64,000 nt of DNA from Macrostomum hystrix (taxonomy: Eukaryota; Animalia; Platyhelminthes): assembly GCA_950097015.1 (NCBI GenBank), contig CATNEN010000002.1, positions 6,510,001 to 6,574,000 on the forward strand, in the 5' to 3' direction. The translations under genes and the position numbers were made by a program. The first letter of the stretch is position 1. Every line of letters begins with the position of its first letter. The notes under the pieces were generated by a model that made no database searches, had not been told where the DNA came from, and saw nothing but the letters and a program-made list of their open reading frames with translations. Shown here piece after piece: positions 20,001 through 38,000 of this stretch.

Positions 20001-23000
20001 GCCAGATCTGCCAAATCATCTGCCACCTGAGAAGGTGCTCGTCAACATGTCCGTGCTAAATGAGTCCCAGATCTACGAGTACGATTATAAGCGGCGTCTC
20101 TATGGCAACAATATCAACGCGCCGATTCTGGATGAAAAGGCCACGTTTAATCCTGAGGTGTTTTTTAACATCATACTGCCGCCAATCATATTCTTTGCCG
20201 GATTCAGCATGAAAAGGGTGAGCTGGGATTCGTGGAAGCCAAGTCTGAATCTACATCTTTAATTAAGATATAAATTATAAAGAGTATAAATCTAGATCTC
20301 AGATTGGGATGTGGGATTAGAGACTAAATCTAGATCTTATATTGGGATGTGGGATCAGAGACTGAATCTAGATCTTATATTGGGATGTGGGAACAGAGAC
20401 TGAATCTAGATCTTATATTGGGATGTGGGATTAGAGACTGAATCTAGATCTTATATTGGGATGTGGGATTAGAGACTGAATCTAGATCTTATATTGGGAT
20501 GTGGGATTAGAGACTGAATCGATCTAGATCTTATATTGGGATGTGGGATAAGAGACTGAATCTAGATCTTATATTGGGATGTGGGATCAGAGACGAATCT
20601 AGATCTTATATTGGGATGTGGGAACAGAGACTGAATCTAGATCTTATATTGGGATGTGAGATTAGAGACTGAATCTAGATCTTATATTGGGATGTGGGAT
20701 TAGAGACTGAATCTAGATCTTATATTGGGATGTGGGATTAGAGACTGAATCTAGATCTTATATTGGGATGTGGGATCAGAGACGGACGAATCTAGATCTT
20801 ATATTGGGATGTGGGAACAGAGACTGAATCTAGATCTTATATTGGGATGTGAGATTAGAGACTGAATCTAGATCTTATATTGGGATGTGGGATTAGAGAC
20901 TGAATCTAGATCTTATATTGGGATGTGGGATTAGAGACTGAATCTAGATCTTATATTGGGATGTGGGATTAGAGACTGAATCGATCTAGATCTTATATTG
21001 GGATGTGGGATAAGAGACTGAATCTAGATCTTATATTGGGATGTGGGATCAGAGACGAATCTAGATCTTATATTGGGATGTGGGAACAGAGACTGAATCT
21101 AGATCTTATATTGGGATGTAGGATTAGAGACTGAATCTAGATCTTATATTGGGATGTGGGATTAGAGACTGAATCTAGATCTTATATTGGGATGTGGGAT
21201 TAGAGACTGAATCTAGATCTTATATTGGGATGTGGGATTAGAGACTGAATCGATCTAGATCTTATATTGGGATGTGGGATAAGAGACTGAATCTAGATCT
21301 TATATTGGGATGTGGGATCAGAGACGAATCTAGATCTTATATTGGGATGTGGGAACAGAGACTGAATCTAGATCTTATATTGGGATGTGGGATTAGAGAC
21401 TGAATCTAGATCTTATATTGGGATGTGGGATTAGAGACTGAATCGATCTAGATCTTATATTGGGATGTGGGATAAGAGACTGAATCTAGATCTTATATTG
21501 GGATGTGGGATCAGAGACGAATCTAGATCTTATATTGGGATGTGGGATTAGAGACTGAATCTAGATCTTATATTGGGATGTGGGATTAGAGACTGAATCT
21601 AGATCTTATATTGGGATGTGGGATTAGAGACTGAATCTAGATCTTATATTGGGATGTGGGATTAGAGACTGAATCTAGATCTTATATTGGGATGTGGGAT
21701 CAGAGACGGACGAATCTAGATCTTATATTGGGATGTGGGAACAGAGACTGAATCTAGATCTTATATTGGGATGTGAGATTAGAGACTGAATCTAGATCTT
21801 ATATTGGGATGTGGGATTAGAGACTGAATCTAGATCTTATATTGGGATGTGGGATTAGAGACTGAATCTAGATCTTATATTGGGATGTGGGATTAGAGAC
21901 TGAATCGATCTAGATCTTATATTGGGATGTGGGATAAGAGACTGAATCTAGATCTTATATTGGGATGTGGGATCAGAGACGAATCTAGATCTTATATTGG
22001 GATGTGGGAACAGAGACTGAATCTAGATCTTATATTGGGATGTGGGATTAGAGACTGAATCTAGATCTTATATTGGGATGTGGGATTAGAGACTGAATCT
22101 AGATCTTATATTGGGATGTGGGATTAGAGACTGAATCTAGATCTTATATTGGGATGTGGGATTAGAGACTGAATCGATCTAGATCTTATATTGGGATGTG
22201 GGATAAGAGACTGAATCTAGATCTTATATTGGGATGTGGGATCAGAGACGAATCTAGATCTTATATTGGGATGTGGGAACAGAGACTGAATCTAGATCTT
22301 ATATTGGGATGTGGGATTAGAGACTGAATCTAGATCTTATATTGGGATGTGGGATCAGAGACTGAATCTAGATCTTATATTGGGATGTGGGAACAGAGAC
22401 TGAATCTAGATCTTATATTGGGATGTGAGATTAGAGACTGAATCTAGATCTTATATTGGGATGTGGGATTAGAGGACTGAATCTAGATCTTATATTGGGA
22501 TGTGGGATTAGAGACTGAATCTAGATCTTATATTGGGATGTGGGATTAGAGACTGAATCGATCTAGATCTTATATTGGGATGTGGGATAAGAGACTGAAT
22601 CTAGATCTTATATTGGGATGTGGGATCAGAGACGAATCTAGATCTTATATTGGGATGTGGGAACAGAGACTGAATCTAGATCTTATATTGGGATGTGGGA
22701 TTAGAGACTGAATCTAGATCTTATATTGGGATGTGGGATTAGAGACTGAATCTAGATCTTATATTGGGATGTGGGATTAGAGACTGAATCTAGATCTTAT
22801 ATTGGAATGTGGGATTAGAGACTGAATCGATCTAGATCTTATATTGGGATGTGGGATAAGAGACTGAATCTAGATCTTATATTGGGATGTGGGATCAGAG
22901 ACGAATCTAGATCTTATATTGGGATGTGGGAACAGAGACTGAATCTAGATCTTATATTGGGATGTGGGATTAGAGACTGAATCTAGATCTTATATTGGGA

Positions 23001-26000
23001 TGTGGGATTAGAGACTGAATCTAGATCTTATATTGGGATGTGGGATAAGAGACTGAATCTAGATCTTATATTGGGATGTGGGATTAGAGACTGAATCTAG
23101 ATCTTATATTGGGATGTGGGATTAGAGACTGAATCGATCTAGATCTTATATTAGGATGTGAGATTAGAGACTGAATCTAGATCTTATATTGGGATGTGGG
23201 ATAAGAGACTGAATCTAGATCTTATATTGGGATGTGGGATAAGAGACTGAATCTAGATCTTATATTGGGATGTGGGATTAGAGACTGAATCGATCTAGAT
23301 CTTATATTGGGATGTGAGATTAGAGACTGAATCTAGATCTTATATTGGGATGTGGGATTAGAGACTGAATCTAGATCTTATATTGGGATGTGGGATTAGA
23401 GACTGAATCGATCTAGATCTTATATTGGGATGTGGGATTAGAGACTGAATCTAGATCTTATATTGGGATGTGGGATTAGAGACTGAATCTAGATCTTATA
23501 TTGGGATGTGGGATTAGAGACTGAATCGATCTAGATCTTATATTGGGATGTGGGATAAGAGACTGAATCTAGATCTTATATTGGGATGTGGGATAAGAGA
23601 CTGAATCTAGATCTTATATTGGGATGTGGGATAAGAGACTGAATCTAGATCTTATATTGGGATGTGGGATTAGAGACTGAATCTAGATCTTATATTGGGA
23701 TGTGGGATTAGAGACTGAATCTAGATCTTATATTGGGATGTGGGATTAGAGACTGAATCGATCTAGATCTTATATTGGGATGTGGGATAAGAGACTGAAT
23801 CTAGATCTTATATTGGGATGTGGGATCAGAGACGAATCTAGATCTTATATTGGGATGTGGGAACAGAGACTGAATCTAGATCTTATATTGGGATGTGGGA
23901 TTAGAGACTGAATCTAGATCTTATATTGGGATGTGGGATCAGAGACGAATCTAGATCTTATATTGGGATGTGGGAACAGAGACTGAATCTAGATCTTATA
24001 TTGGGATGTGAGATTAGAGACTGAATCTAGATCTTATATTGGGATGTGGGATTAGAGACTGAATCTAGATCTTATATTGGGATGTGGGATTAGAGACTGA
24101 ATCTAGATCTTATATTGGGATGTGGGATTAGAGACTGAATCGATCTAGATCTTATATTGGGATGTGGGATAAGAGACTGAATCTAGATCTTATATTGGGA
24201 TGTGGGATCAGAGACGAATCTAGATCTTATATTGGGATGTGGGAACAGAGACTGAATCTAGATCTTATATTGGGATGTGGGATTAGAGACTGAATCTAGA
24301 TCTTATATTGGGATGTGGGATTAGAGACTGAATCTAGATCTTATATTGGGATGTGGGATTAGAGACTGAATCTAGATCTTATATTGGGATGTGGGATTAG
24401 AGACTGAATCGATCTAGATCTTATATTGGGATGTGGGATAAGAGACTGAATCTAGATCTTATATTGGGATGTGGGATCAGAGACGAATCTAGATCTTATA
24501 TTGGGATGTGGGAACAGAGACTGAATCTAGATCTTATATTGGGATGTGGGATTAGAGACTGAATCTAGATCTTATATTGGGATGTGGGATTAGAGACTGA
24601 ATCTAGATCTTATATTGGGATGTGGGATCAGAGACGAATCTAGATCTTATATTGGGATGTGGGAACAGAGACTGAATCTAGATCTTATATTGGGATGTGG
24701 GATTAGAGACTGAATCTAGATCTTATATTGGGATGTGGGATCAGAGACTGAATCTAGATCTTATATTGGGATGTGGGAACAAATATATCTTTCAATTTTT
24801 TTTGGCAGAAACACTTCTTCAGGAACATCGGTTCAATTTTGACGTTGGCTTTTCTAGGCACCACAGTGTCCTGCTTTGTCATCGGGTGAGCCTATATAAT
24901 TGCTCAACTAAGCACCTGTTCAATTTGGGATTAAAATCCTTAGCTATATATTATGTTGTCTGCTTTTCAGTGGCATTGTGTTCGGCATCAGTCGGGCCAG
25001 CGCGAGGCTGGCAGCTCAGGTGTCTTTCAGCGAATGTCTGCTGTTTGGCGCTTTCATCTCCGCCACTGATCCAGGTCAGTGATTTAAACTGCATTAACTG
25101 CTTGGCTCATATCTTATTTGGTTTGTAGAGAGTTGTAAAATGTGCTTTTTGCTTAACGCGCTACTTAAAGTAATGCCATAAGGAACTCTTAGCTACAACA
25201 TTTAATCTATTTTTAGGAATGAGTCATACGCTATTTTTAGAAACAGTCATGTGACATGAAACCGGAGAACCGGTTCTTGACAGCTGTGTTTGCTTGAATT
25301 CCAAATATGGTAAAGCAAACAATTATGACTCATCGGGTTCTGCGTCTGTGTTTGCACTGTATTCCAAATATGGTAAAAACTCACAATCATGACTCACTAA
25401 ACAAATATGTGTGACCTAAGTAAACACCCGGTAGTAGAACCGGTTTTTCCCCAAGGTTTTGCTATAAATACAAGCGAAAATCCGAGCTAAAAATTCAGAC
25501 TCGGAGCGGTCCACCGGACTTCAAAACACCTTACGAAGAAGAGGACTCATCTCTGAGGGAAAGACAAGTGGTAAGCGCTTTACTAGACAGAGTAATTTAT
25601 TGCTAGCAATAGTTGTTGAATTGAACTAAGTTTACGAGAGCCACATATCGTCGATAAATTTGAGAAAGGCCTCCTTGTTTCCTAGGATACATTCCTAGAG
25701 GATTATTGATTGATTTGATTTGAGTTATCCGTTATCTTTCGGAGGTAACGAAGAAGACGCCCTTCAGGAGGACCTATCAGAGATATACAAGAGAGATTTC
25801 AATTGTTCACTAGGGCGCACGTTTCTATTGTGAATTCCGAGCTCGAGGAAACCGAAAAGTAATCTGATTCGCTCTCGTCATTTATTGGCCAACAGACAAA
25901 CTCAAGCAGCTGCCAAGAAGACAAAGAAGACAAGACTACAAAGACTCAAGAAACGTAGACTCGAAACCTCACGGTCGACCAGAACAAGAAGAAGGAGAAC

Positions 26001-29000
26001 TTACCGGACTACAAGGATCCAGAAGACTATAAACTACTTAAGGAAGAAGAAGCAATCGCAGTAAGTGTCACGTGACTGTTATAAATTCCTAGGCAATTGT
26101 TCCCCATTGTCTAGAAGTGGGAGTTTCGTGTGTCTGATCAACACGCAAAACTCTTCAACTGGTGATCTCGCCCAGGCCCTGCAATCAAGCCCAGGCCGAG
26201 ATACAAAACATTTTTTGCGGTACCCCTTTCGAATTGTTTTAACATAAAAAAAAAAAGGAAAAAAAATTTTTGCAACTTATTAATTTTGCTTTTGATTTAA
26301 AATAATCCACCGTTTCATAAAAATTTTGTTGCGTCATCCCTCTGAAAAATTTTGCTGTCCCTACCGGATATTGTTTGCACATAAGCCACACGCGTCACTT
26401 CGCTCTATTGTTTGCACACCTGGGAATCGCGCGACTGAACTCACCGGCTCACATTTCAATAACCCCTTTTCAGCGTTAAAAGCGGCATACGTTCCCTGCT
26501 TTGTATAAATTTTTCTCCCTTGTCCTGAGTAAATAATTCCTCTGTGTAAACCATTTTCAATTTGCTGATACACACGCACACGCACACACACACACTTTTT
26601 ATTCACACTAAATCTTGTCAGAGAAGTCAATCTGGACGAACCCTTGAACATCGATCCAGAACTTGAATTATTTCCGTTCCCAGTTGCGAATATGGCACGA
26701 AGAAACTATCAGGTCCATCGTGACATTAAGGAAACGGTCGGAATGTATACAATGGATAAAGATTTCAACACATTCATTGATCACTTTGATTTGGTCTCAC
26801 GCGAATATGGATTACAGAATGCAGAGAAAGCACTCCTCCTACCTCCACTGTTACAAGGAACAGCTCGAGAAATCTATGGAAAATTGACAGCTGCAGTACA
26901 ACAAGATTATCAAGCTCTAGTTACCCAACTGAGAGCACAATTCGCACGGTGTGGAACAAACAGATCGGTACTCCTTCATAAACTTCATAATCGAAAAATG
27001 AGTCCCACTGAGAGTTTTCTCACCTTTGTTGATGACATCCGTAAGATCATCAAAGCATTACATCAGCCTCCACCATTGGATCAAGGAGCTCAACCTATAG
27101 GACCTGCCGAATCAGCTGCACGAGAAAGACAACGTCTTGAAGACCGGGAACAAAGTTTAATACTTCATGTGATTAACAACGCACAGCCTACTTTGCGAGA
27201 TAGACTGCTGAGAGAAACTATTAACACAGAGGAACAATTGCTCCGTTGTGGAATGCAATGGGAAGCTAGCGCACCTCTTATGACTACTCATAATAGTGAC
27301 ACGACACAACTAGCAGAACAATTAAGCAAACTCATGCAGCAACACCAAACTTCTGCTATTGTACCACAACAGCAGAGATATTCCTATCCACAACCACAAC
27401 AGAGATACTTGCACACATCAACTTGTTACACCTGTGGAAGGATCGGTCATTATGCTAGAGACTGCAGATCACGTGGCAACCCACGTTCATACAATGACAA
27501 TAGACAGACCAATTGGACTCGTCCTCCAAGACAGCTTTCAAACCGTAATTGGACAAATAGTCGACAACAAGATAGTAGACCATCTAATGCCATCGTACCT
27601 TATCGTCAACAAAGAAATCCTCCACCTCCAAGACAACCAACGCAAGTCCGTCGACAATACACTCAAGCTATTGAGCCTGAATACACTCAAACTATTGAAC
27701 CAAAGTTCAAGATTGAAGATCTTATGCCAGACTTTTCCGTCAATGTTCTTGATGAACTTGAGAAACAAAAGAAGGAGCAAGAAATCAATGACCTTCATCT
27801 GGACAACGATGGTGCAGCCTATATTACTATAATCGAAAGCGACCATTCGAAAGAGCCGCCCATGCCACAAAAGGAAACAGAGGATACAGAAGAAAACAAT
27901 TTTTACTACAACAATGAGTCAACACAGGAAATACAGAACGACAACACAAGCAACGACAGCAGCTGCATAATGGGTTCATTGTTTGAAGAATTATCGATTC
28001 CCTCGCCAAGAGAAAGTGTTGCCTTCAACACCTGTCAACACATTGAACGAAAACAAGTACAACAACAAATCAAAGGATTATTCAAAATTCCAACGATGAG
28101 TGATCTTTCAAAAATTCTGCAAAACAAAGAAGGCATAGATGAATTGTCCACATCCACAGAAAAGAATAATGAGGACCACAGTGCGACAAATTCACACAAC
28201 ACGTCTGAAGAAAGCATCAGCATGCTACAAATTTTAGTCGATGACATCGACTTGACAGAGACACCGCCTTCGACACCCAAGTACAAACCTGATCCCGAAT
28301 ACGAAAACATAACCCATGTCAATTCATCTGAAGGACAGAATGGACACGATAAAGCAGTGAATACCGAATCATACTACTCGAAGCACGATAGATCTTCTCA
28401 GACTAAAAGTGACTACAATACGTCGATGGAAAATGATGACGATCATATCTATGATGAACCAACAACGTGGATCGACATGAGAACGGATACTACAAGTACC
28501 GTACTGCAAACTCTCAATACACCATTAACATTCGATATGAAACAACCAACCTGGTATAACCAACAAACCAGACCATCAGGATGCAACAACCCATGGCACT
28601 TTTCTATGCGCCTTACTCCACCAATTGGAGAGACAGAAGACCAACGATATTCAATAAACACCAATAAACCGACACCACCAACCAAAGTGAAGAAAAAGAA
28701 ACGACACATACTGATAAGATGGTTGTTTTCAGCCATCGTGATGTTGCTTCTCCCGACAGTTGTACCATCTTCAGTGCCCATGATTTGCCCTACTGATGCC
28801 AACATCCAACCAGTCATCTACAAAATACCAACGGAAATCAAGTGCAGTTACTTTAAAACTAATCAAACAAAACCTATTCCATTAACGATCGATGTCTACA
28901 AAGCAAACACAAAGAAACATAGACAATATGGTATTATCTGTTTCCGAGATAAACATGAACTAGAAAAGGTTTGGTACATCCAATGGAATCGCATCCGATT

Positions 29001-32000
29001 CTGGCAAACAGCACTGCCTGTCACACAAGAAGAATGCCTCCAGTGGAACCAAACATTATTTTCTAAAGATGGAGAACTTCATGCCGATGAAAAGATTGGA
29101 AACTCTCAACTCTTCAGAACCAAGAACAGTGCGAACGGTAGATATGTCCATTGGAACGAATACATATGGCCACGTTACACCACGCACAAACATGCCTTCA
29201 AATACAAAGGACCTTTCCGTGTAACAGCAATGATATCCGCAACAACAGCACGCCTTGCAAATATCCAGGATCCACATCAACCTCAGTTCTATGTTCACAT
29301 TCAACGTTTAAAACGCATCACTAAGGACACTACATTCCTTCCAACGTTACAGAATCCAGACCACACAAAAACAACAAACAAGCACATTGCAACAGCACAT
29401 GCCGAGACACAAACCACAAACACACCACCAAATAATCATACGTATAACTTACGCCCGCGTTAAATTACTCGTTTATTGTTCCCCGTGTAGTGACCGGGAT
29501 TAAGAATAGCACTACAGCTTCTCAAGCTTGTCGTAAAAGGCGACTAAAACCTCTGCTCTCTGCAACGCCCACACAATTTTCGCGAACACTACCATGGACT
29601 GTCCTGTCTGTCTTGAAGAATTCTCATGTAAACTACCATGTATATGTGTCAATAAACACCATGTTTGCGGTTCTTGCTTAAGCCTCGCACACTACAAAAA
29701 ACCATTAAAAAACTGTCCCTTGTGCCGTGGAAATCTCCGCCAATGTATGATATGTAACTCATGGCGAACTGTACAATACTGTCAAAACCAACATTTCATG
29801 TGTCCGCAATGTATAAAGAAGTTTGCCTATCGAGCCATTTTCCAATGTCCTGTTTGCAATAATACCCCACTATTAGTAATCTATAACAAATTTGCGCGTA
29901 TTAAACCAAATTATGGTTGCCAACTTCATCCATTAACCTATACTCTTTTTTCCTCTAATAAGATAATTCAACTTCTAAAAGCATGGCCTATACCACGAAT
30001 TGCTCACAAAACACGTAAAAACATTGTACGATACTCATTGCAATACGGCCCTGAGCTTCGACAATTGTCCATACATGATATTGCACAAAAACTGTTTAAT
30101 CTTGTCGATGACATGAATCTTCATCCCTGTCCCATTTTCTGTACAATTTTACCCACACTAATTTTAAGAAATGAAGACTTATCGTATCTACTGCCACCAC
30201 ACGAATCATATGAATATGTCAACTCCGATCAAGAAGTCCATTAAACAAACCACCCACAGACAACAATGCCAGACTGCCCTATTTGCTTAGACGAGCAGAC
30301 CACTCTAATGCCCATATGCGAAGTCGGACATGGGACATGCCAACAATGCGAGACAGCCGCAAAGCAAACTGGCAACCCAATACGCACCTGCCCAATCTGC
30401 TGTCGAGACAGGGTCCACTGTCTCATTTGCGGTAATCAACCGCAAATACAAATTTGTGACAACCGTCACTGGAGCTGCTTTACCTGCCTAGAGGCACTCG
30501 GCAGTCGAAATATCGACAAATGCCCCGATTGTTTCCTACGGATGCGAGCGGAACCCTTAGCTACGGTACAATTAACACCGGTAGCAGTGGACCTACTGCT
30601 CATGAATGTGCATGACATGGAGCCTCAGGAATTACGAGAGACAATAAAGACGTGGCCGACACCACTACGATGCCAACAACATCGGCAATATTTACTTCAA
30701 CTAGGCGAGCATCTGACACGCCGAGCCGAAATTGTCACGGATACAGAGGCCTACCTCTATATCCTCGAGCATACGGAAGATCCGGCCTACCTGCAACTAT
30801 ATAAACTATTTTGGCCAATAGCCATACTAACGGTCAAAACTCAAGCACAAATACATGAATATATCCGGCATCAATTCAGCCTTGAATAAGTAAAAAAATT
30901 TTTGATTGCATCAACTAGTAAAACAAACAGACCATTGATTATTGCATATACCTTCCCATGTTTATCACTCCCTCATGTTAACCAATACAATCCAAAATTT
31001 TATGTTATTGACAACCCACTATACGCTAAATGTCAAGATACTCTTTGTTATACAATGGTGACGGATTTTCAATGCCAAAATGGTTACACATCGCTTCTCA
31101 AATTGTCAATTTCTTTTCACGAACATTTAACCAACTACTTACACCACTGATATAATCCATTTGTGTTTTAAGGTCTACCCATACGCACCTAAATCCATTT
31201 CACCTAGTCCTGATACTGTCAATACGTGATGTTATCTTATTATTGTTATGCTATTTTCTTTTCCTCTCAACAATAAATTCGGGACGAATTTTTCGTAAAA
31301 AAGGGAGATATTGTAGAGAGTTGTAAAATGTGCTTTTTGCTTAACGCGCTACTTAAAGTAATGCCATAAGGAACTCTTAGCTACAACATTTAATCTATTT
31401 TTAGGAATGAGTCATACGCTATTTTTAGAAACAGTCATGTGACATGAAACCGGAGAACCGGTTCTTGACAGCTGTGTTTGCTTGAATTCCAAATATGGTA
31501 AAGCAAACAATTATGACTCATCGGGTTCTGCGTCTGTGTTTGCACTGTATTCCAAATATGGTAAAAACTCACAATCATGACTCACTAAACAAATATGTGT
31601 GACCTAAGTAAACACCCGGTAGTAGAACCGGTTTTTCCCCAAGGTTTTGCTATAAATACAAGCGAAAATCCGAGCTAAAAATTCAGACTCGGAGCGGTCC
31701 ACCGGACTTCAAAACACCTTACGAAGAAGAGGACTCATCTCTGAGGGAAAGACAAGTGGTAAGCGCTTTACTAGACAGAGTAATTTATTGCTAGCAATAG
31801 TTGTTGAATTGAACTAAGTTTACGAGAGCCACATATCGTCGATAAATTTGAGAAAGGCCTCCTTGTTTCCTAGGATACATTCCTAGAGGATTATTGATTG
31901 ATTTGATTTGAGTTATCCGTTATCTTTCGGAGGTAACGAAGAAGACGCCCTTCAGGAGGACCTATCAGAGATATACAAGAGAGATTTCAATTGTTCACTA

Positions 32001-35000
32001 GGGCGCACGTTTCTATTGTGAATTCCGAGCTCGAGGAAACCGAAAAGTAATCTGATTCGCTCTCGTCATTTATTGGCCAACAGACAAACTCAAGCAGCTG
32101 CCAAGAAGACAAAGAAGACAAGACTACAAAGACTCAAGAAACGTAGACTCGAAACCTCACGGTCGACCAGAACAAGAAGAAGGAGAACTTACCGGACTAC
32201 AAGGATCCAGAAGACTATAAACTACTTAAGGAAGAAGAAGCAATCGCAGTAAGTGTCACGTGACTGTTATAAATTCCTAGGCAATTGTTCCCCATTGTCT
32301 AGAAGTGGGAGTTTCGTGTGTCTGATCAACACGCAAAACTCTTCAGGTTCTGCCTGGGTTTAAAGTACTACCTGTTCATAATCCTACCTGGTTCTTAATC
32401 CTACCTCGTTCATGATCCTACCTGGTTCTTAATCCTACCTGGTTCTTAATCCTACCTGGTTCTTAATCCTACCTGGTTCATGATCCTACCTGGTTCTTAA
32501 TCCTACGTGTTCATAATCCTACCTGGTTCTTAATCCTACCTGGTTCATGATCCTACCTGGTTCTTAATCCTACGTGTTCATAATCCTACCTGGTTCATAA
32601 TCCTACCTGGTTCTTAATCCTACGTGTTCATGATCCTACCTGGTTCTTAATCCTACGTGTTCTTAATCCTACCTGGTTCTTAATCCTACCTGGTTCATGA
32701 TCCTACCTGGTTCTTAATCCTACGTGTTCATAATCCTACCTGGTTCTTAATCCTACCTGGTTCTTAATCCTTCCTGCTTCATAATCCTTCCTGCTTCATA
32801 ATCCTACCTGGTTTAAAGTCATACTTTGTTCATTATCCTACGCTATTAATAATGCCACCTGTTAATAATCCTAATTAATAATTAATAATCCTAACTGATT
32901 CCTAATCCTATCTGATTTGTAATACTACATAATTCACAATTGTACCTGTTTCATTATCCTACCTATTTCATATCCAACCTGATTTATTATCCTACCTGTT
33001 TCATTATCCTAACCTCTTTCATAATCCAACCTGTTTCATAATCCTATGTGTTTCATAATCCTACCTGTTTCATAATCTTACATGATTCATAATCCCTCCT
33101 GGTTCATAATCAACCCGTTTCAGATTGTAAATAATCCATTAGCCGCTTGATTTGTCACTAAATATCTTAATACCATCTCCCCCATCTCATCACAACCTCA
33201 GTGACCGTGCTGGCAATCTTCAGCGATCTCAGAGTGGAGCCAGATCTGTACGCCCTGGTATTCGGCGAGAGCGTCCTTAACGACGCAGTCGCCATCGTCC
33301 TGTCCGAGTCCATCGAAACCTACGATGTTGCCGCCGCCGCGGGCGGTAAAGCCGCCATCGCCGTGCTGAAGGCCATCGGCAGCTTCGCCGGAGTGTTCCT
33401 CGGCGCCATCGGCATCGGCTGCCTGCTGGGATGCCTCACTGCCGCCATCACCAAGTTCACACAGGTGGGCTGGCCTGAATGCACTTAGATATCCAATCAG
33501 CCTTGAGATATCCTATCTCTTATCGAATATCCCATCTCCTTTTATTCATCCCATCCCAATTAGATATAATCCCATCCACATTAGATATCCCATCCTGCAT
33601 TAAACATCCCATCCCACATTATATATCCCAACCCCGTTAGATATCCCATCCTACATTAGATATCCCATCCCACATTAGATATCCCATCCTGCATTAGATA
33701 TTCCATCCTACATTAGATATCCCATCCAGCATTAAACATCCCATCCCACATTAAATATTCCATCCTGCATTAGATATCCCATCCCACATTAGATATCCCA
33801 TCCTACATTAGATATTCCATCCTACATTAGATATCCCATCCTACATTAGATATCCCATCCAGCATTAAACATCCCATCCCACATTAAATATTCCATCCTG
33901 CATTAGATATCCCATCCCACATTAGATATCCCATCCTACATTAGATATCTCATCCTACATTAGATATCCCATCCCACATTATATATCCCAACCCCGTTAG
34001 ATATCCCATCCTACATTAGATATCCCATCCTACATTAGATATCCCATCCCACATTAGATATCCCATCCTACATTAGATATCCCATCCTACATTAGATATC
34101 CCATCCGGCATTAAACATCCCATCCCACATTAAATATTCCATCCTGCATTAGATATCCCATCCCACATTACATATCCCATCCTACATTAGATATCTCATC
34201 CTACATTAGATATCTCATCCTATATTAGATATCTCATCCTACATTAGATATCCCATCCTACATTAGATATCCCATCCCACATTAGATATCTCATCCTACA
34301 TTAGATATCCCATCCTACATTAGATATCTCATCCTACATTAGATATCTCATCCAGCATTAAACATCCCATCCCACATTAAATATTCCATCCTGCATTAGA
34401 TATCCCATCCCACATTAGATATCCCATCCTACATTAGATATCTCATCCTACATTAGATATCCCATCCCACATTATATATCCCAACCCCGTTTGATATCCC
34501 ATCCTACATTAGATATCCCATCCCACATTAGATATCTCATCCTACATTAGATATCCCATCCTACATTAGATATCCCATCCCACATTAGATATCCCATCCT
34601 ACATTAGATATCCCATCCCGCATTAAACATCCCACCCCACATTAGATATCCCATCCCGCATTAAACATCCCGTCCCTATTAGATAATTTTTCCCGAGAGA
34701 GGCCTTACCCTAAACCCCATACTTCCCTTGCCCTCCATACTCGTGCAGGTCCGTGAGCACCCTCTGCTGGAGACCAGCCTGTTTGTTTTGATGAGCTACG
34801 CGACATTCCTGGCTGCCGAGGCTGTGAGAAGCACGGGCATTGTGGCTGTACTGTTCTGCGGCATCTGCCAGGCTCACTACACTTACAATAACCTGTCTGA
34901 CGAGTCCAAGGCCACCACTGTGTCCTTCTTTCGTCTATTGAATTTCCTGGCGGAGAATTTCACCTTTGTCTATATTGGTGTGAGCGTGTTCACCTACAGC

Positions 35001-38000
35001 TCTCACCTGTGGGATCCTGTGTTCATTATGGCGGCCCTACTAGCTATGATTGCCGGCCGGGTGCTCAGCGTCTACCCGCTGTGCTGCCTGCTGAACATCG
35101 GCCGCCGGCGCAGCGGCTGCGCCATCGGCCCCAACCGAATGCACGTCCTGGCCTTCTCCGGCCTTCGCGGCGCGATAGCCTTCGCCTTGGCCATCAGGAA
35201 CACCTCGTCGGACGCTAGGAAAATAATCTTCTCCACCACCCTGATCCTAGTGATGAGCACCGTGCTCATCTGCGGCGGCCTCACCACCCAGATGCTGCAG
35301 TGGATGCGAATCGAGTCAGTGCTATTGTCTTATTTATTAATCCCTCTGAACAATGCGCCGACATGTTAATCCTCGCCTGACATTGCAGAGTGGGCGTCGA
35401 GGAGGAACCGGCCCCCCAGCAACAGCCCGACGGCATGGATGGAGGCTCCGAGGTGCGCACAGAATCCCATTGTCTCTGAATCCCTTTCTTTTTTAAGCTC
35501 CAATGACTTTTGAAACCTCTGAAGACTCATTTTTTCTGAAATCCTATTCCATTTCAAATCCCATTTAGTTTTTAAATCCCATTTAGTATCAAATCCCATT
35601 TAGTTTTAAATCCCATTTAGTTTCAAATCCCATTTAGTTTTAAATCCCATTTAGTTTTAAATCCCATTTAGTTTTAAATCCCATTTAGTTTTAAATCCCA
35701 TTTAGTATCAAATCCCATTTAGTTTTAAATCCCATTTAGTTTTAAATCCCATTTAGTTTTAAATCCCATTTAGTTTTTAAATCCCATTTAGTTTTAAATC
35801 CCATTTAGTTTTAAATCCCATTTAGTTTTAAATCCCATTTAGTTTTAAATCCCATTTAGTTTTAAATCCCATTTAGTTTTAAATCCCATTTAGTATCAAA
35901 TCCCATTTAGTTTTAAATCCCATTTAGTTTTAAATCCCATTTAGTTTTTAAATCCCATTTAGTATCAAATCCCATTTAGTTTTTAAATCCCATTTAGTTT
36001 TAAATCCCATTTAGTTTTAAATCCCATTTAGTTTTAAATCCCATTTAGTTTTAAATCCCATTTAGTTTTTAAATCCCATTTAGTATCAAATCCCATTTAG
36101 TTTTAAATCCCATTTAGTTTTTAAATCCCATTTAGTATCAAATCCCATTTAGTGTCAAATCCCATTTAGTTTTAAATCCCATCTATTAAAAAATCCGAGT
36201 CCGTTAGAAATCATATTTTATCTGTAGTCCAGTTCTTTAATCTTATTTATTTAGTATCCAATTCCGATAAAAAATCACTTTTTAACTGAAATCCTACCTT
36301 AGCAACTAAAAAATCCTAGTCTTTTGAATTTGCTAGTTAAACTCTCATCCTGTATTTATCCTAATTCAACTGATATCACATGTACAAGTAAATCACCTGT
36401 CGCCTAGCTCGTTATCCGAATTTATATTTATTTTAGTCACAGGTGCTCGCTCGGGAACCGAACATACGCGATCGCTCCTGCATCGCGATTTCCTGGCGGA
36501 AATTCGACAACAAGTGAGCCGTTTTTTCGTGTTAAACCTCCTCCCTTCATCTCCAATCACCAGATCCATTCATCACCGATCACCAGATCCATTCATCACC
36601 GATCACCAGACCCCTTCATCTCTGATCACTAGATCCCTTCATCTCCCATCACCAGATCCCTTCATTTCTGATCACCAGATCCCTTCATTTCTGATCACTA
36701 GATCCCTTCATCTCCCATCACCAGATCCCTTCATTTCTGATCACCAGATCCCTTCATTTCTGATCACTAGATCCCTTCATCTCCCATCACCAGATCCCTT
36801 CATTTCTGATCACTAGATCCCTTCATCTCCCATCACCAGATCCCTTCATTTCTGATCACCAGATCCCTTCATTTCTGATCACTAGATCCCTTCATCTCCC
36901 ATCACCAGATCCCTTCATTTCTGATCACCAGATCCCTTCATTTCTGATCACTAGATCCCTTCATCTCCCATCACCAGATCCCTTCATTTCTGATCACCAG
37001 ATCCCTTCATTTCTGATCACTAGATCCCTTCATCTCCCATCACCAGATCCCTTCATTTCTGATCACCAGATCCCTTCATTTCTGATCACTAGATCCCTTC
37101 ATCTCCCATCACCAGATCCCTTCATTTCTGATCACTAGATCCCTTCATCTCCCATCACCAGATCCCTTCATTTCTGATCACCAGATCCCTTCATTTCTGA
37201 TCACTAGATCCCTTCATCTCCCATCACCAGATCCCTTCATTTCTGATCACCAGATCCCTTCATTTCTGATCACTAGATCCCTTCATCTCCCATCACCAGA
37301 TCCCTTCATTTCTGATCACCAGATCCCTTCATTTCTGATCACTAGATCCCTTCATCTCCCATCACCAGATCCCTTCATTTCTGATCACCAGATCCCTTCA
37401 TTTCTGATCACTAGATCCCTTCATCTCCCATCACCAGATCCCTTCATTTCTGATCACTAGATCCCTTCATCTCCCATCACCAGATCCCTTCATTTCTGAT
37501 CACCAGATCCCTTCATTTCTGATCACCAGATCCCTTCATTTCTGATCACTAGATCCCTTCATCTCCCATCACCAGATCCCTTCATTTCTGATCACCAGAT
37601 CCCTTCATTTCTGATCACTAGATCCCTTCATCTCCCATCACCAGATCCCTTCATTTCTGATCACCAGATCCCTTCATTTCTGATCACTAGATCCCTTCAT
37701 CTCCCATCACCAGATCCCTTCATTTCTGATCACCAGATCCCTTCATTTCTGATCACTAGATCCCTTCATCTCCCATCACCAGATCCCTTCATTTCTGATC
37801 ACCAGATCCCTTCATTTCTGATCACTAGATCCCTTCATCTCCCATCACCAGATCCCTTCATTTCTGATCACCAGATCCCTTCATTTCTGATCACTAGATC
37901 CCTTCATCTCCCATCACCAGATCCCTTCATCTCCAATCTCCAGATCCCTACATCCCCAATGCCGCATCCCAGATCATCGCGCTGTAGCACAGAGACTCCT

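Follow-up and report, generated by a model that had tools for sequence, protein, structure and literature searches.

Host-manipulating accessory genes are a hallmark of the complex retroviruses, and very few are known in the long terminal repeat (LTR) retroelements of invertebrates. Lentiviral Vif, Vpx/Vpr and Vpu, accessory proteins made from spliced mRNAs, send host defence factors to ubiquitin-dependent degradation via recruited cullin-RING ligases, and the RING E3 ubiquitin ligases of the herpesvirus ICP0 family and of baculoviruses (IE2 and PE38), which are DNA-virus proteins with a single RING, degrade host restriction factors. In Drosophila gypsy, as in retroviruses, a 3' open reading frame (ORF), be it env or an accessory gene, is expressed by splicing from a leader donor to an acceptor that closely precedes the ORF. 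Closest to the present case are elements with the order GAG-ENV-POL, which has been published for Platyhelminthes; the nematode element Cer1 is reported as sister to a flatworm element of gB type (both PMC13524379). Here we analyse a 64,000-nucleotide stretch of the genome of the flatworm Macrostomum hystrix (contig CATNEN010000002.1, positions 6,510,001 to 6,574,000 of the forward strand; hereafter the window), in which an LTR element carries two adjacent genes, ORF-A and ORF-B, each encoding a protein with two RING domains. These are best read as accessory genes of a Ty3/gypsy, endogenous-retrovirus-like family with the order LTR, gag, putative class III env, protease (PR), reverse transcriptase (RT), RNase H (RH), integrase (IN), RING-A, RING-B, LTR.

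The features of the window copy are listed below, numbered from the first letter of the window; a slash marks the splice point.

25124-32345, + strand: whole LTR element, delimited by its LTRs, target-site duplication (TSD), primer-binding-site-like (PBS-like) site and polypurine tract (PPT)
25120-25123, + strand: 5' copy of the TSD, GGTT, from sequence comparison
25124-26157, + strand: 5' LTR, 1034 bp, TG...CA, 100% identical to the 3' LTR
26160-26176, + strand: PBS-like site, TGG-initiated, TGGTGATCTCGCCCAGG, 2 nt past the end of the 5' LTR
26692-29463, + strand: fused gag/glycoprotein/integrase-tail ORF, from the ORF list, domain scan and comparison with a full-length sibling
29182-29192, + strand: deletion junction with 11-bp microhomology, from alignment to the full-length sibling
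29594-30244, + strand: ORF-A, intact, 216 aa, two C3HC4 RINGs and a helical domain
30258-30259, + strand: splice acceptor AG, CCCACAG/ACAACAATG, with the exon starting at 30260, 6 nt before the ORF-B ATG
30266-30889, + strand: ORF-B, intact, 207 aa, two C3HC4 RINGs and a helical W-P domain
31297-31308, + strand: PPT, AAAAAAGGGAGA, just upstream of the 3' LTR
31312-32345, + strand: 3' LTR, 1034 bp, same sequence as the 5' LTR, with a copy of the splice donor at 32248
32346-32349, + strand: 3' copy of the TSD, GGTT, from sequence comparison

The initial annotation, made from the letters of the window, had described a recently mobile element with 1034-bp LTRs, a 4-bp TSD, a PBS and a PPT, and with two intact ORFs 21 bp apart that share a G-poor strand bias. 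This description holds. The LTRs are identical (the raw identical run is 1035 bp, a T at 25123 and 31311 being common to both flanks), GGTT stands on both sides, the PBS-like site and the purine tract are present, both ORFs are intact with a spacing of 21 bp, and the strand composition is A 31, C 26, G 17 and T 26%. LTR pairs are identical in three copies, and the family is currently or recently active. The upstream ORF had been labelled gag, which is correct for one part of it, a gag with one CCHC knuckle, but not for the whole, since the ORF, a product of the internal deletion described below, continues through an acidic, low-complexity stretch and a signal or transmembrane (TM) helix with the N-terminal portion of a putative class III glycoprotein, before ending in the C-terminal tail of an integrase.

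A full-length sibling of 12.1 kb lies on another contig, with its own LTR pair identical. It has one unbroken ORF of 2600 aa with the domain order CCHC, putative class III glycoprotein, RVP, RVT_1, RT_RNaseH, Integrase_H2C2 and rve, followed by both RING ORFs, which differ from those of the window by one synonymous change in A and by none in B. The window copy lacks ∼4.9 kb that is present in the sibling, having lost PR, RT and RH together with the remainder of env and the greater part of IN. It had been claimed that the RING module was kept while pol was lost, and a search for relatives with pol had been proposed; the sibling, with its gag-env-pol ORF, is such a relative, and because it carries pol the loss is a property of the window copy and not of the family. 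The window copy is thus a non-autonomous deletion derivative which retains both RING genes. As to other copies, a first look at the 220-Mb, 42-contig genome gave 143 candidate family LTRs, 40 of which were scored, at 87–100% identity, and a genome search placed RING-ORF sequence at about a dozen sites.

The assignment to Ty3/gypsy (Metaviridae) is one of domain order and not of an RT tree: the window has TG..CA LTRs, a short TSD, a PBS-like site, a PPT and a CCHC gag, and the sibling has the order PR-RT-RH-IN. In the sibling, gag and protease are separated by ∼1000 aa that match PF24664 (Monjiviricetes_fusion) with an E-value of 1.6e-6 at 26.8 bits, just under the cut-off of 27, and resemble rhabdovirus-G/gB clusters in the Atlas (score 0.89, 190 of 256 features in common). 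This glycoprotein region (L046:1326-3518:-) is in frame within the gag-env-pol ORF, and its N-terminal remnant lies at ∼28700-29180 of the window. The differences between the window copy and the sibling (L045/L046) are unevenly placed, with none in 26247-27878, 31 in 27879-29564, two in 29565-31844 and others clustered within the 3' portion of the LTR; such a mosaic is typical of recombination between co-packaged RNAs.

Selection, splicing and relatives of the RING genes

ORF-A and ORF-B are very probably real accessory genes under selection. The ratio of non-synonymous to synonymous substitution rates (dN/dS) was calculated against other copies at 5–10% DNA divergence; these comparisons share the window sequence and related copies, and are hence not independent. 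For ORF-A the ratio was 0.18–0.30 in five of the six comparisons (p 2e-6 to 5e-4) and 0.42 in the sixth (L005, p 0.06), with out-of-frame controls of 0.6–4.3. ORF-B gave 0.38–0.44 (p 0.001–0.004), its controls being 0.52 in one frame (p 0.03–0.04) and 1.2–1.35 in the other, and B', a third paralogue type introduced below, gave 0.24–0.29 (p 3e-4 to 7e-3; out-of-frame controls 0.7–7.1). Overall the out-of-frame controls are mostly near 1. The RING half is more constrained than the tail, at 0.07–0.23 against 0.17–0.43 in ORF-A. C-to-T hypermutation was considered as the source of the many TAA stops and was rejected, the mutation spectrum being ordinary and transition-rich.

We are also fairly confident that ORF-B is expressed from a spliced mRNA. 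The region is covered by contigs of four runs, which we take to be RNA because the contig sets total 42–50 Mb against the 220 Mb of the genome and contain canonical splice joints. Two introns within the element are defined by these contigs:

25571-25895, + strand: intron wholly inside the LTR leader, 325 nt, GT..AG, placed to within 1 nt; each of the four runs has contigs with 25569/70 joined to 25895/96
25896-26060, + strand: leader exon 2, ending at the major donor GCA/GTAAGT (GT at 26061-26062), from the run contigs

The second joint, 26060 to 30260 (GT..AG), is present in contigs of all four runs and skips 4199 nt (26061-30259); a genome search at up to three mismatches did not find this joined form in the assembly. 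Among 15 LTR variants the donor hexamer shows no change; B-type copies retain the acceptor, and in B' a CAG immediately precedes the ATG. From 30260 to the 3' LTR the contigs match the window without a difference, and they have k-mer depths of 44–125, as compared with 6–15 for gag contigs, although such depths are a poor measure of expression; loose contig ends were seen at 29184, the deletion junction. Transcription begins within the LTR, gag-env-pol is served by the unspliced RNA, and, since the leader exons hold no ATG, the subgenomic mRNA without 26061-30259 has the AUG of ORF-B as its first. The genomic RNA must retain 25571-25895, the intron of the LTR leader, for the LTR to be regenerated. 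For ORF-A there is a candidate acceptor AG at 29489-29490. A fusion of ORF-A to pol via a frameshift was considered and rejected, as five copies have a stop 19 codons upstream of the ATG of ORF-A.

Relatives of the module were found outside this genome with a profile of five family proteins, which retrieved eleven proteins from 1.8 billion representatives. Among them, P0002 is an intact A-type protein of 40% identity; on the independent Logan contig that encodes it, it immediately follows an integrase sharing 64% identity with that of the window family. P0001, a UniRef protein of Macrostomum lignano, contains two complete B-like units and a partial third one, and short contigs supply more diverged members, P0003, P0004, P0005 and P0010. 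The full HMM (hidden Markov model) scan was needed to find them: in a word-indexed search ORF-B alone found no homologue and a 12-sequence profile found two proteins. Because an A-type homologue follows a 64%-identical integrase elsewhere and a relative exists in M. lignano, the RING module is old relative to the copies in this genome; it evolves faster than pol and has kept its position after integrase. P0006 is of another kind: this protein of 612 aa on an 8.6-kb ENA contig is built from ten tandem repeats of ∼61 aa that all match the W-P portion of the helical domain (E 6e-11), and it could be a satellite that arose from that domain in another organism. Within the M. hystrix genome, distant RING or helical matches outside the family copies (C1:9266811-9267258, C39:14594559-14594813, C1:5698416-5698538 and C1:10867357-10867524; 33–58% identity over parts) may belong to other element families or to a host relative.

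The module is also exchanged and lost. In some copies (L007:962-1471:-, L006, L011) ORF-B is replaced by B', which is 42% identical to it, while ORF-A in these copies is still 92–93% identical in DNA, so that the accessory module appears to have been exchanged between lineages. A RING-less subfamily is present at three or more sites, where one common breakpoint has removed ORF-A past codon 64 and the whole of ORF-B; in the single copy analysed over its full length, the LTRs are identical and the 2607-aa gag-env-pol ORF is intact.

The initial annotation had proposed a long-retained, duplicated accessory module as opposed to a recent capture, and had named copies decaying at random (dN/dS about 1) and a near-exact host match as grounds for abandoning it. 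The ratios are well below 1 for A, B and B', and genome searches found no near-identical host copy of A or B. Its further proposal to look at RNA data is answered by the spliced ORF-B mRNA in the four runs, and purifying selection, this mRNA, the place of P0002 after integrase, the M. lignano relative and the RING fold described in the next section all agree with long retention.

The RING proteins and how their role may be read

ORF-A and ORF-B are 30% identical (E 1e-10) and are thus paralogues. Each has two consecutive C3HC4 motifs 6 residues apart, followed by a helical part with a conserved K-x-W-P, and the RING-HC pattern C-x2-C-x(9-39)-C-x(1-3)-H-x(2-3)-C-x2-C-x(4-48)-C-x2-C fits A, B and B' in both halves. 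Across 12 family members, conservation reaches at least 90% for the W-P motif and for each of the 16 zinc ligands of the two motifs, in agreement with the earlier description of two homologous yet diverged double-RING ORFs with a W-P helical end. Against the PDB, the family profile matches the TRIM21 RING (E 1.6e-4) and RING1B (E 2e-3) with its first RING (RING1), and BRE1, CBL and MDM2 only weakly (E 0.05–0.15) with its second (RING2). On inspection, RING1 starts with C-P-[IV]-C-L and ends with C-P-x-C-R, which align to CPICL and CPVCR of TRIM21. We take the RING1 residues aligned to TRIM21 to be those that contact the E2 enzyme and ubiquitin, and the Arg after the last Cys to be at the E2~ubiquitin ‘linchpin’ position. 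RING2 is without an Arg after its last Cys in all sequences. The RBR (RING-between-RING) class, in which domains of roughly 50 aa (RING1, IBR and a RING2 with a catalytic Cys) are set apart by linkers, does not describe these proteins: Pfam finds no IBR, both domains are canonical C3HC4 motifs 6 residues apart, and no RBR is among the structural matches listed.

Structure prediction, which had been proposed as a check, gives a cross-brace RING fold for ORF-B. The AlphaFold2 model built with a 12-sequence alignment has a mean predicted local distance difference test score (pLDDT) of 92.8 and a predicted TM-score of 0.83; with a 5-sequence alignment the pLDDT was 52.8 and the model unusable. The 50 PDB matches listed by Foldseek are mostly RING or U-box E3 domains, none of them at E ≤ 0.001, and the best local fits among the matches listed are to RING1B (2.6 Å) and TRIM21 (2.5 Å), each over 49 residues with 35–37% identity and a probability of 0.97–0.99. 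VIA-align placed residues 1-51 on the Nse1 RING and 47-100 on the RNF213 RING, both with Z 4.9. Residues 116-207 form a helical bundle with generic helical-bundle matches (Z at most 5.9), and no convincing structural relative of this domain was found by VIA-align (Z ≤ 5.9) or by the Atlas shape search (TM ≤ 0.38 by query). Prediction of an A–B heterodimer gave a score of 0.00, but the partner was poorly folded and the family alignments were not used, so that it is no evidence either way.

On balance we lean slightly towards each RING protein being a subunit of a RING-type E3 ubiquitin ligase. As RING1 retains the E2-contact residues it is likely to be the catalytic domain, and RING2, being without the Arg, is more likely to be structural; the lineage-specific helical W-P domain would be the part that binds a substrate or partner. 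If the proteins are ligases, they would bring tandem RINGs and a new substrate-binding domain together in a compact architecture.

Several results weigh against reading the pair as selected, ligase-encoding accessory genes. The four runs come from one study and bear no RNA label. The near-identity of the RING region in the window copy and the sibling was rejected as evidence for selection, since the differences are mosaic along the whole element. The RING-less subfamily with intact gag-pol has spread, so that the element can do without the RING genes in cis; these genes may work in trans or confer a conditional advantage. At the protein level, Pfam scores ORF-B at 18.6 bits for zf-C3HC4 (cut-off 21) and 20.5 for Sina_RING (cut-off 29.3), both below the gathering scores, and a Pfam scan found no RING match in ORF-A; codon 46 of ORF-B (30401-30403) in the young copies is Cys where all ten other aligned RING1s have Arg. 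All older copies examined have an ORF-A broken by frameshifts or stops, which is what dead insertions would be expected to show. No joint upstream of ORF-A was found in the contigs of the four runs, which drop rare isoforms, and the ORF-A contigs are at the level of unspliced RNA and stem partly from diverged copies.

The main rival explanation, which we regard as possible although rather unlikely, is that the RING proteins are non-catalytic zinc-finger regulators or structural factors, whose cross-brace only binds protein or RNA: an RNA-export factor similar to Rev or to CERV of Cer1, a transcriptional regulator, or a matrix-like protein as is arenavirus Z. Without CERV, the product of a spliced mRNA, unspliced genomic RNA of Cer1 is not exported (PMC10309623), and since the present element keeps strong splice sites in its genomic RNA, it too needs some export route for unspliced RNA; the domains of CERV, however, are unrelated to the RING proteins, and neither a basic RNA-binding patch nor a motif resembling a nuclear localisation signal is evident in them by inspection. 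The weak Foldseek matches do include Lassa Z, yet the best matches are catalytic RINGs (TRIM21, RING1B, RNF4, cIAP2 and BIRC7). The missing Arg, in RING1 of young ORF-B and in RING2 throughout, would fit a non-catalytic role, whereas the typical E2-contact residues retained in RING1 would not.

A second and less probable explanation holds that only ORF-B works, ORF-A being a decaying duplicate that is intact by chance in the two youngest copies. Spliced mRNA was indeed seen for ORF-B only, and ORF-B is intact in L003 and L004, at 8–10% DNA divergence, whereas no older copy examined has ORF-A in frame. However, of the three types it is ORF-A that shows the lowest dN/dS, particularly in its RING half, an intact A-type homologue follows integrase in another assembly, and the loss of rare isoforms from contigs means that the missing joint does not show absence. 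The remaining explanation, that the ORFs are passengers without function for the element, either a recently captured host RING gene or chance ORFs, could draw on the dispensability of the module in cis and on the failed word-based search with ORF-B alone, but it is already largely refuted, and very improbable, given ratios well below 1 beside controls mostly near 1, zinc ligands conserved in 12 diverged sequences, a position after integrase kept in a 64%-identical pol lineage, intronless ORFs of the element's own G-poor composition, a dedicated splice acceptor for ORF-B and genome searches that found no near-identical host copy.

Returning to the reading of the pair as ligase genes, their targets are a matter of speculation, and could be proteins of the element itself, or host factors which restrict or silence it. 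A counter-defence role in particular is speculative and, in our estimate, doubtful: the paralogue pair would ubiquitinate host silencing or restriction factors, for example of the piRNA pathway, chromatin or innate immunity, in a manner similar to Vif or ICP0, with the W-P domain as a fast-evolving target-recognition part, and the family would then be the first retroelement known to encode its own RING E3s. Flatworm stem-cell genome defence is already studied; if the RING proteins are ligases, they would lead directly to what restricts retroelements in flatworms, with their substrates as candidates. The natural RING-less and pol-less derivatives in one genome provide built-in comparisons.

The LTR promoter and the surrounding host gene

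The LTR has a TATA box at 25463 and, upstream of it, two CArG boxes and three AP-1-like sites. The CArG boxes at 25301 and 25364 are perfect (CCAAATATGG), and the AP-1-like sites are at 25220, 25326 and 25390, within U3 (LTR copies 25220-25470 and 31408-31658). At least as many CArG and AP-1 sites were found in 6 and 1, respectively, of 2000 shuffles. This points to an LTR promoter that is immediate-early-like and of SRF/AP-1 type.

In each of the four runs, contigs also join the LTR donor (26060/32248) to 33202 in a host Na+/H+ exchanger gene, at an exon whose acceptor AG is at 33200-33201:

33202-33488, + strand: internal exon of the host Na+/H+ exchanger, spliced to the LTR donor in contigs of the four runs

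This RNA is an LTR-initiated chimeric host transcript, and the element lies in an intron of the gene in sense orientation. The host introns flanking the element contain long minisatellite arrays with units of 17, 19, 23 and 38 bp (22000-24600, 32300-32900, 33460-34400, 35460-36200 and 36400-37700).

Comparison with described systems

In rotifer LTR retrotransposons the types of additional ORF (aORF) are reportedly env-like, GDSL lipase, DEDDy exonuclease, dUTPase and antisense ORFs. Like the RING genes, the aORFs of plant and rotifer elements are conserved and additional to gag-pol; they often occupy the place of env (PMC7264820 and PMC5408684). The likeness to Vif, Vpx/Vpr and Vpu, which carry no RING themselves, would be functional, and hypothetical only. 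ICP0, IE2 and PE38 are alike in being virus-encoded C3HC4 RINGs with E2-contact residues, and 1chc is among the matches of the family profile in the PDB; the rest of their sequence is unrelated, and the window proteins differ in having tandem RINGs and a W-P helical domain, and in being encoded by a retroelement.

With regard to expression, the subgenomic env mRNA of gypsy and retroviruses is similar in that a spliced message makes the AUG of a 3' ORF the first. It differs in its product, as ORF-B encodes a soluble double-RING protein with no signal peptide or TM helix, and the putative env of this family lies between gag and pol. Cer1 CERV is likewise a Ty3/gypsy accessory protein made from a spliced subgenomic mRNA, but, as described in PMC10309623, it is a five-exon product which overlaps the polyprotein frame and has helical, multimerising and GTPase-like domains with one Cys loop and no RING.

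The family had not been recognised as a described one. As regards the RING genes this stands, since a full-text search of the literature found no description of an LTR retroelement that encodes a RING; as regards the backbone it does not, the GAG-ENV-POL order having already been published (PMC13524379). An active flatworm element here combines a retrovirus-like splicing programme with two selected genes of predicted E3-ligase fold. It resembles the GAG-ENV-POL ‘errantiviruses’ of Platyhelminthes, Nematoda and Bryozoa with gB-type (class III) ENV (PMC13524379, eLife 2026) in its Ty3/gypsy backbone, its putative class III glycoprotein between gag and pol, its flatworm host and its multiple near-identical copies. 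Whilst that paper, for the terms looked up, makes no mention of RING, zinc-finger or accessory genes after pol in those elements, the window family has two genes past the integrase, one of them with its own spliced mRNA.

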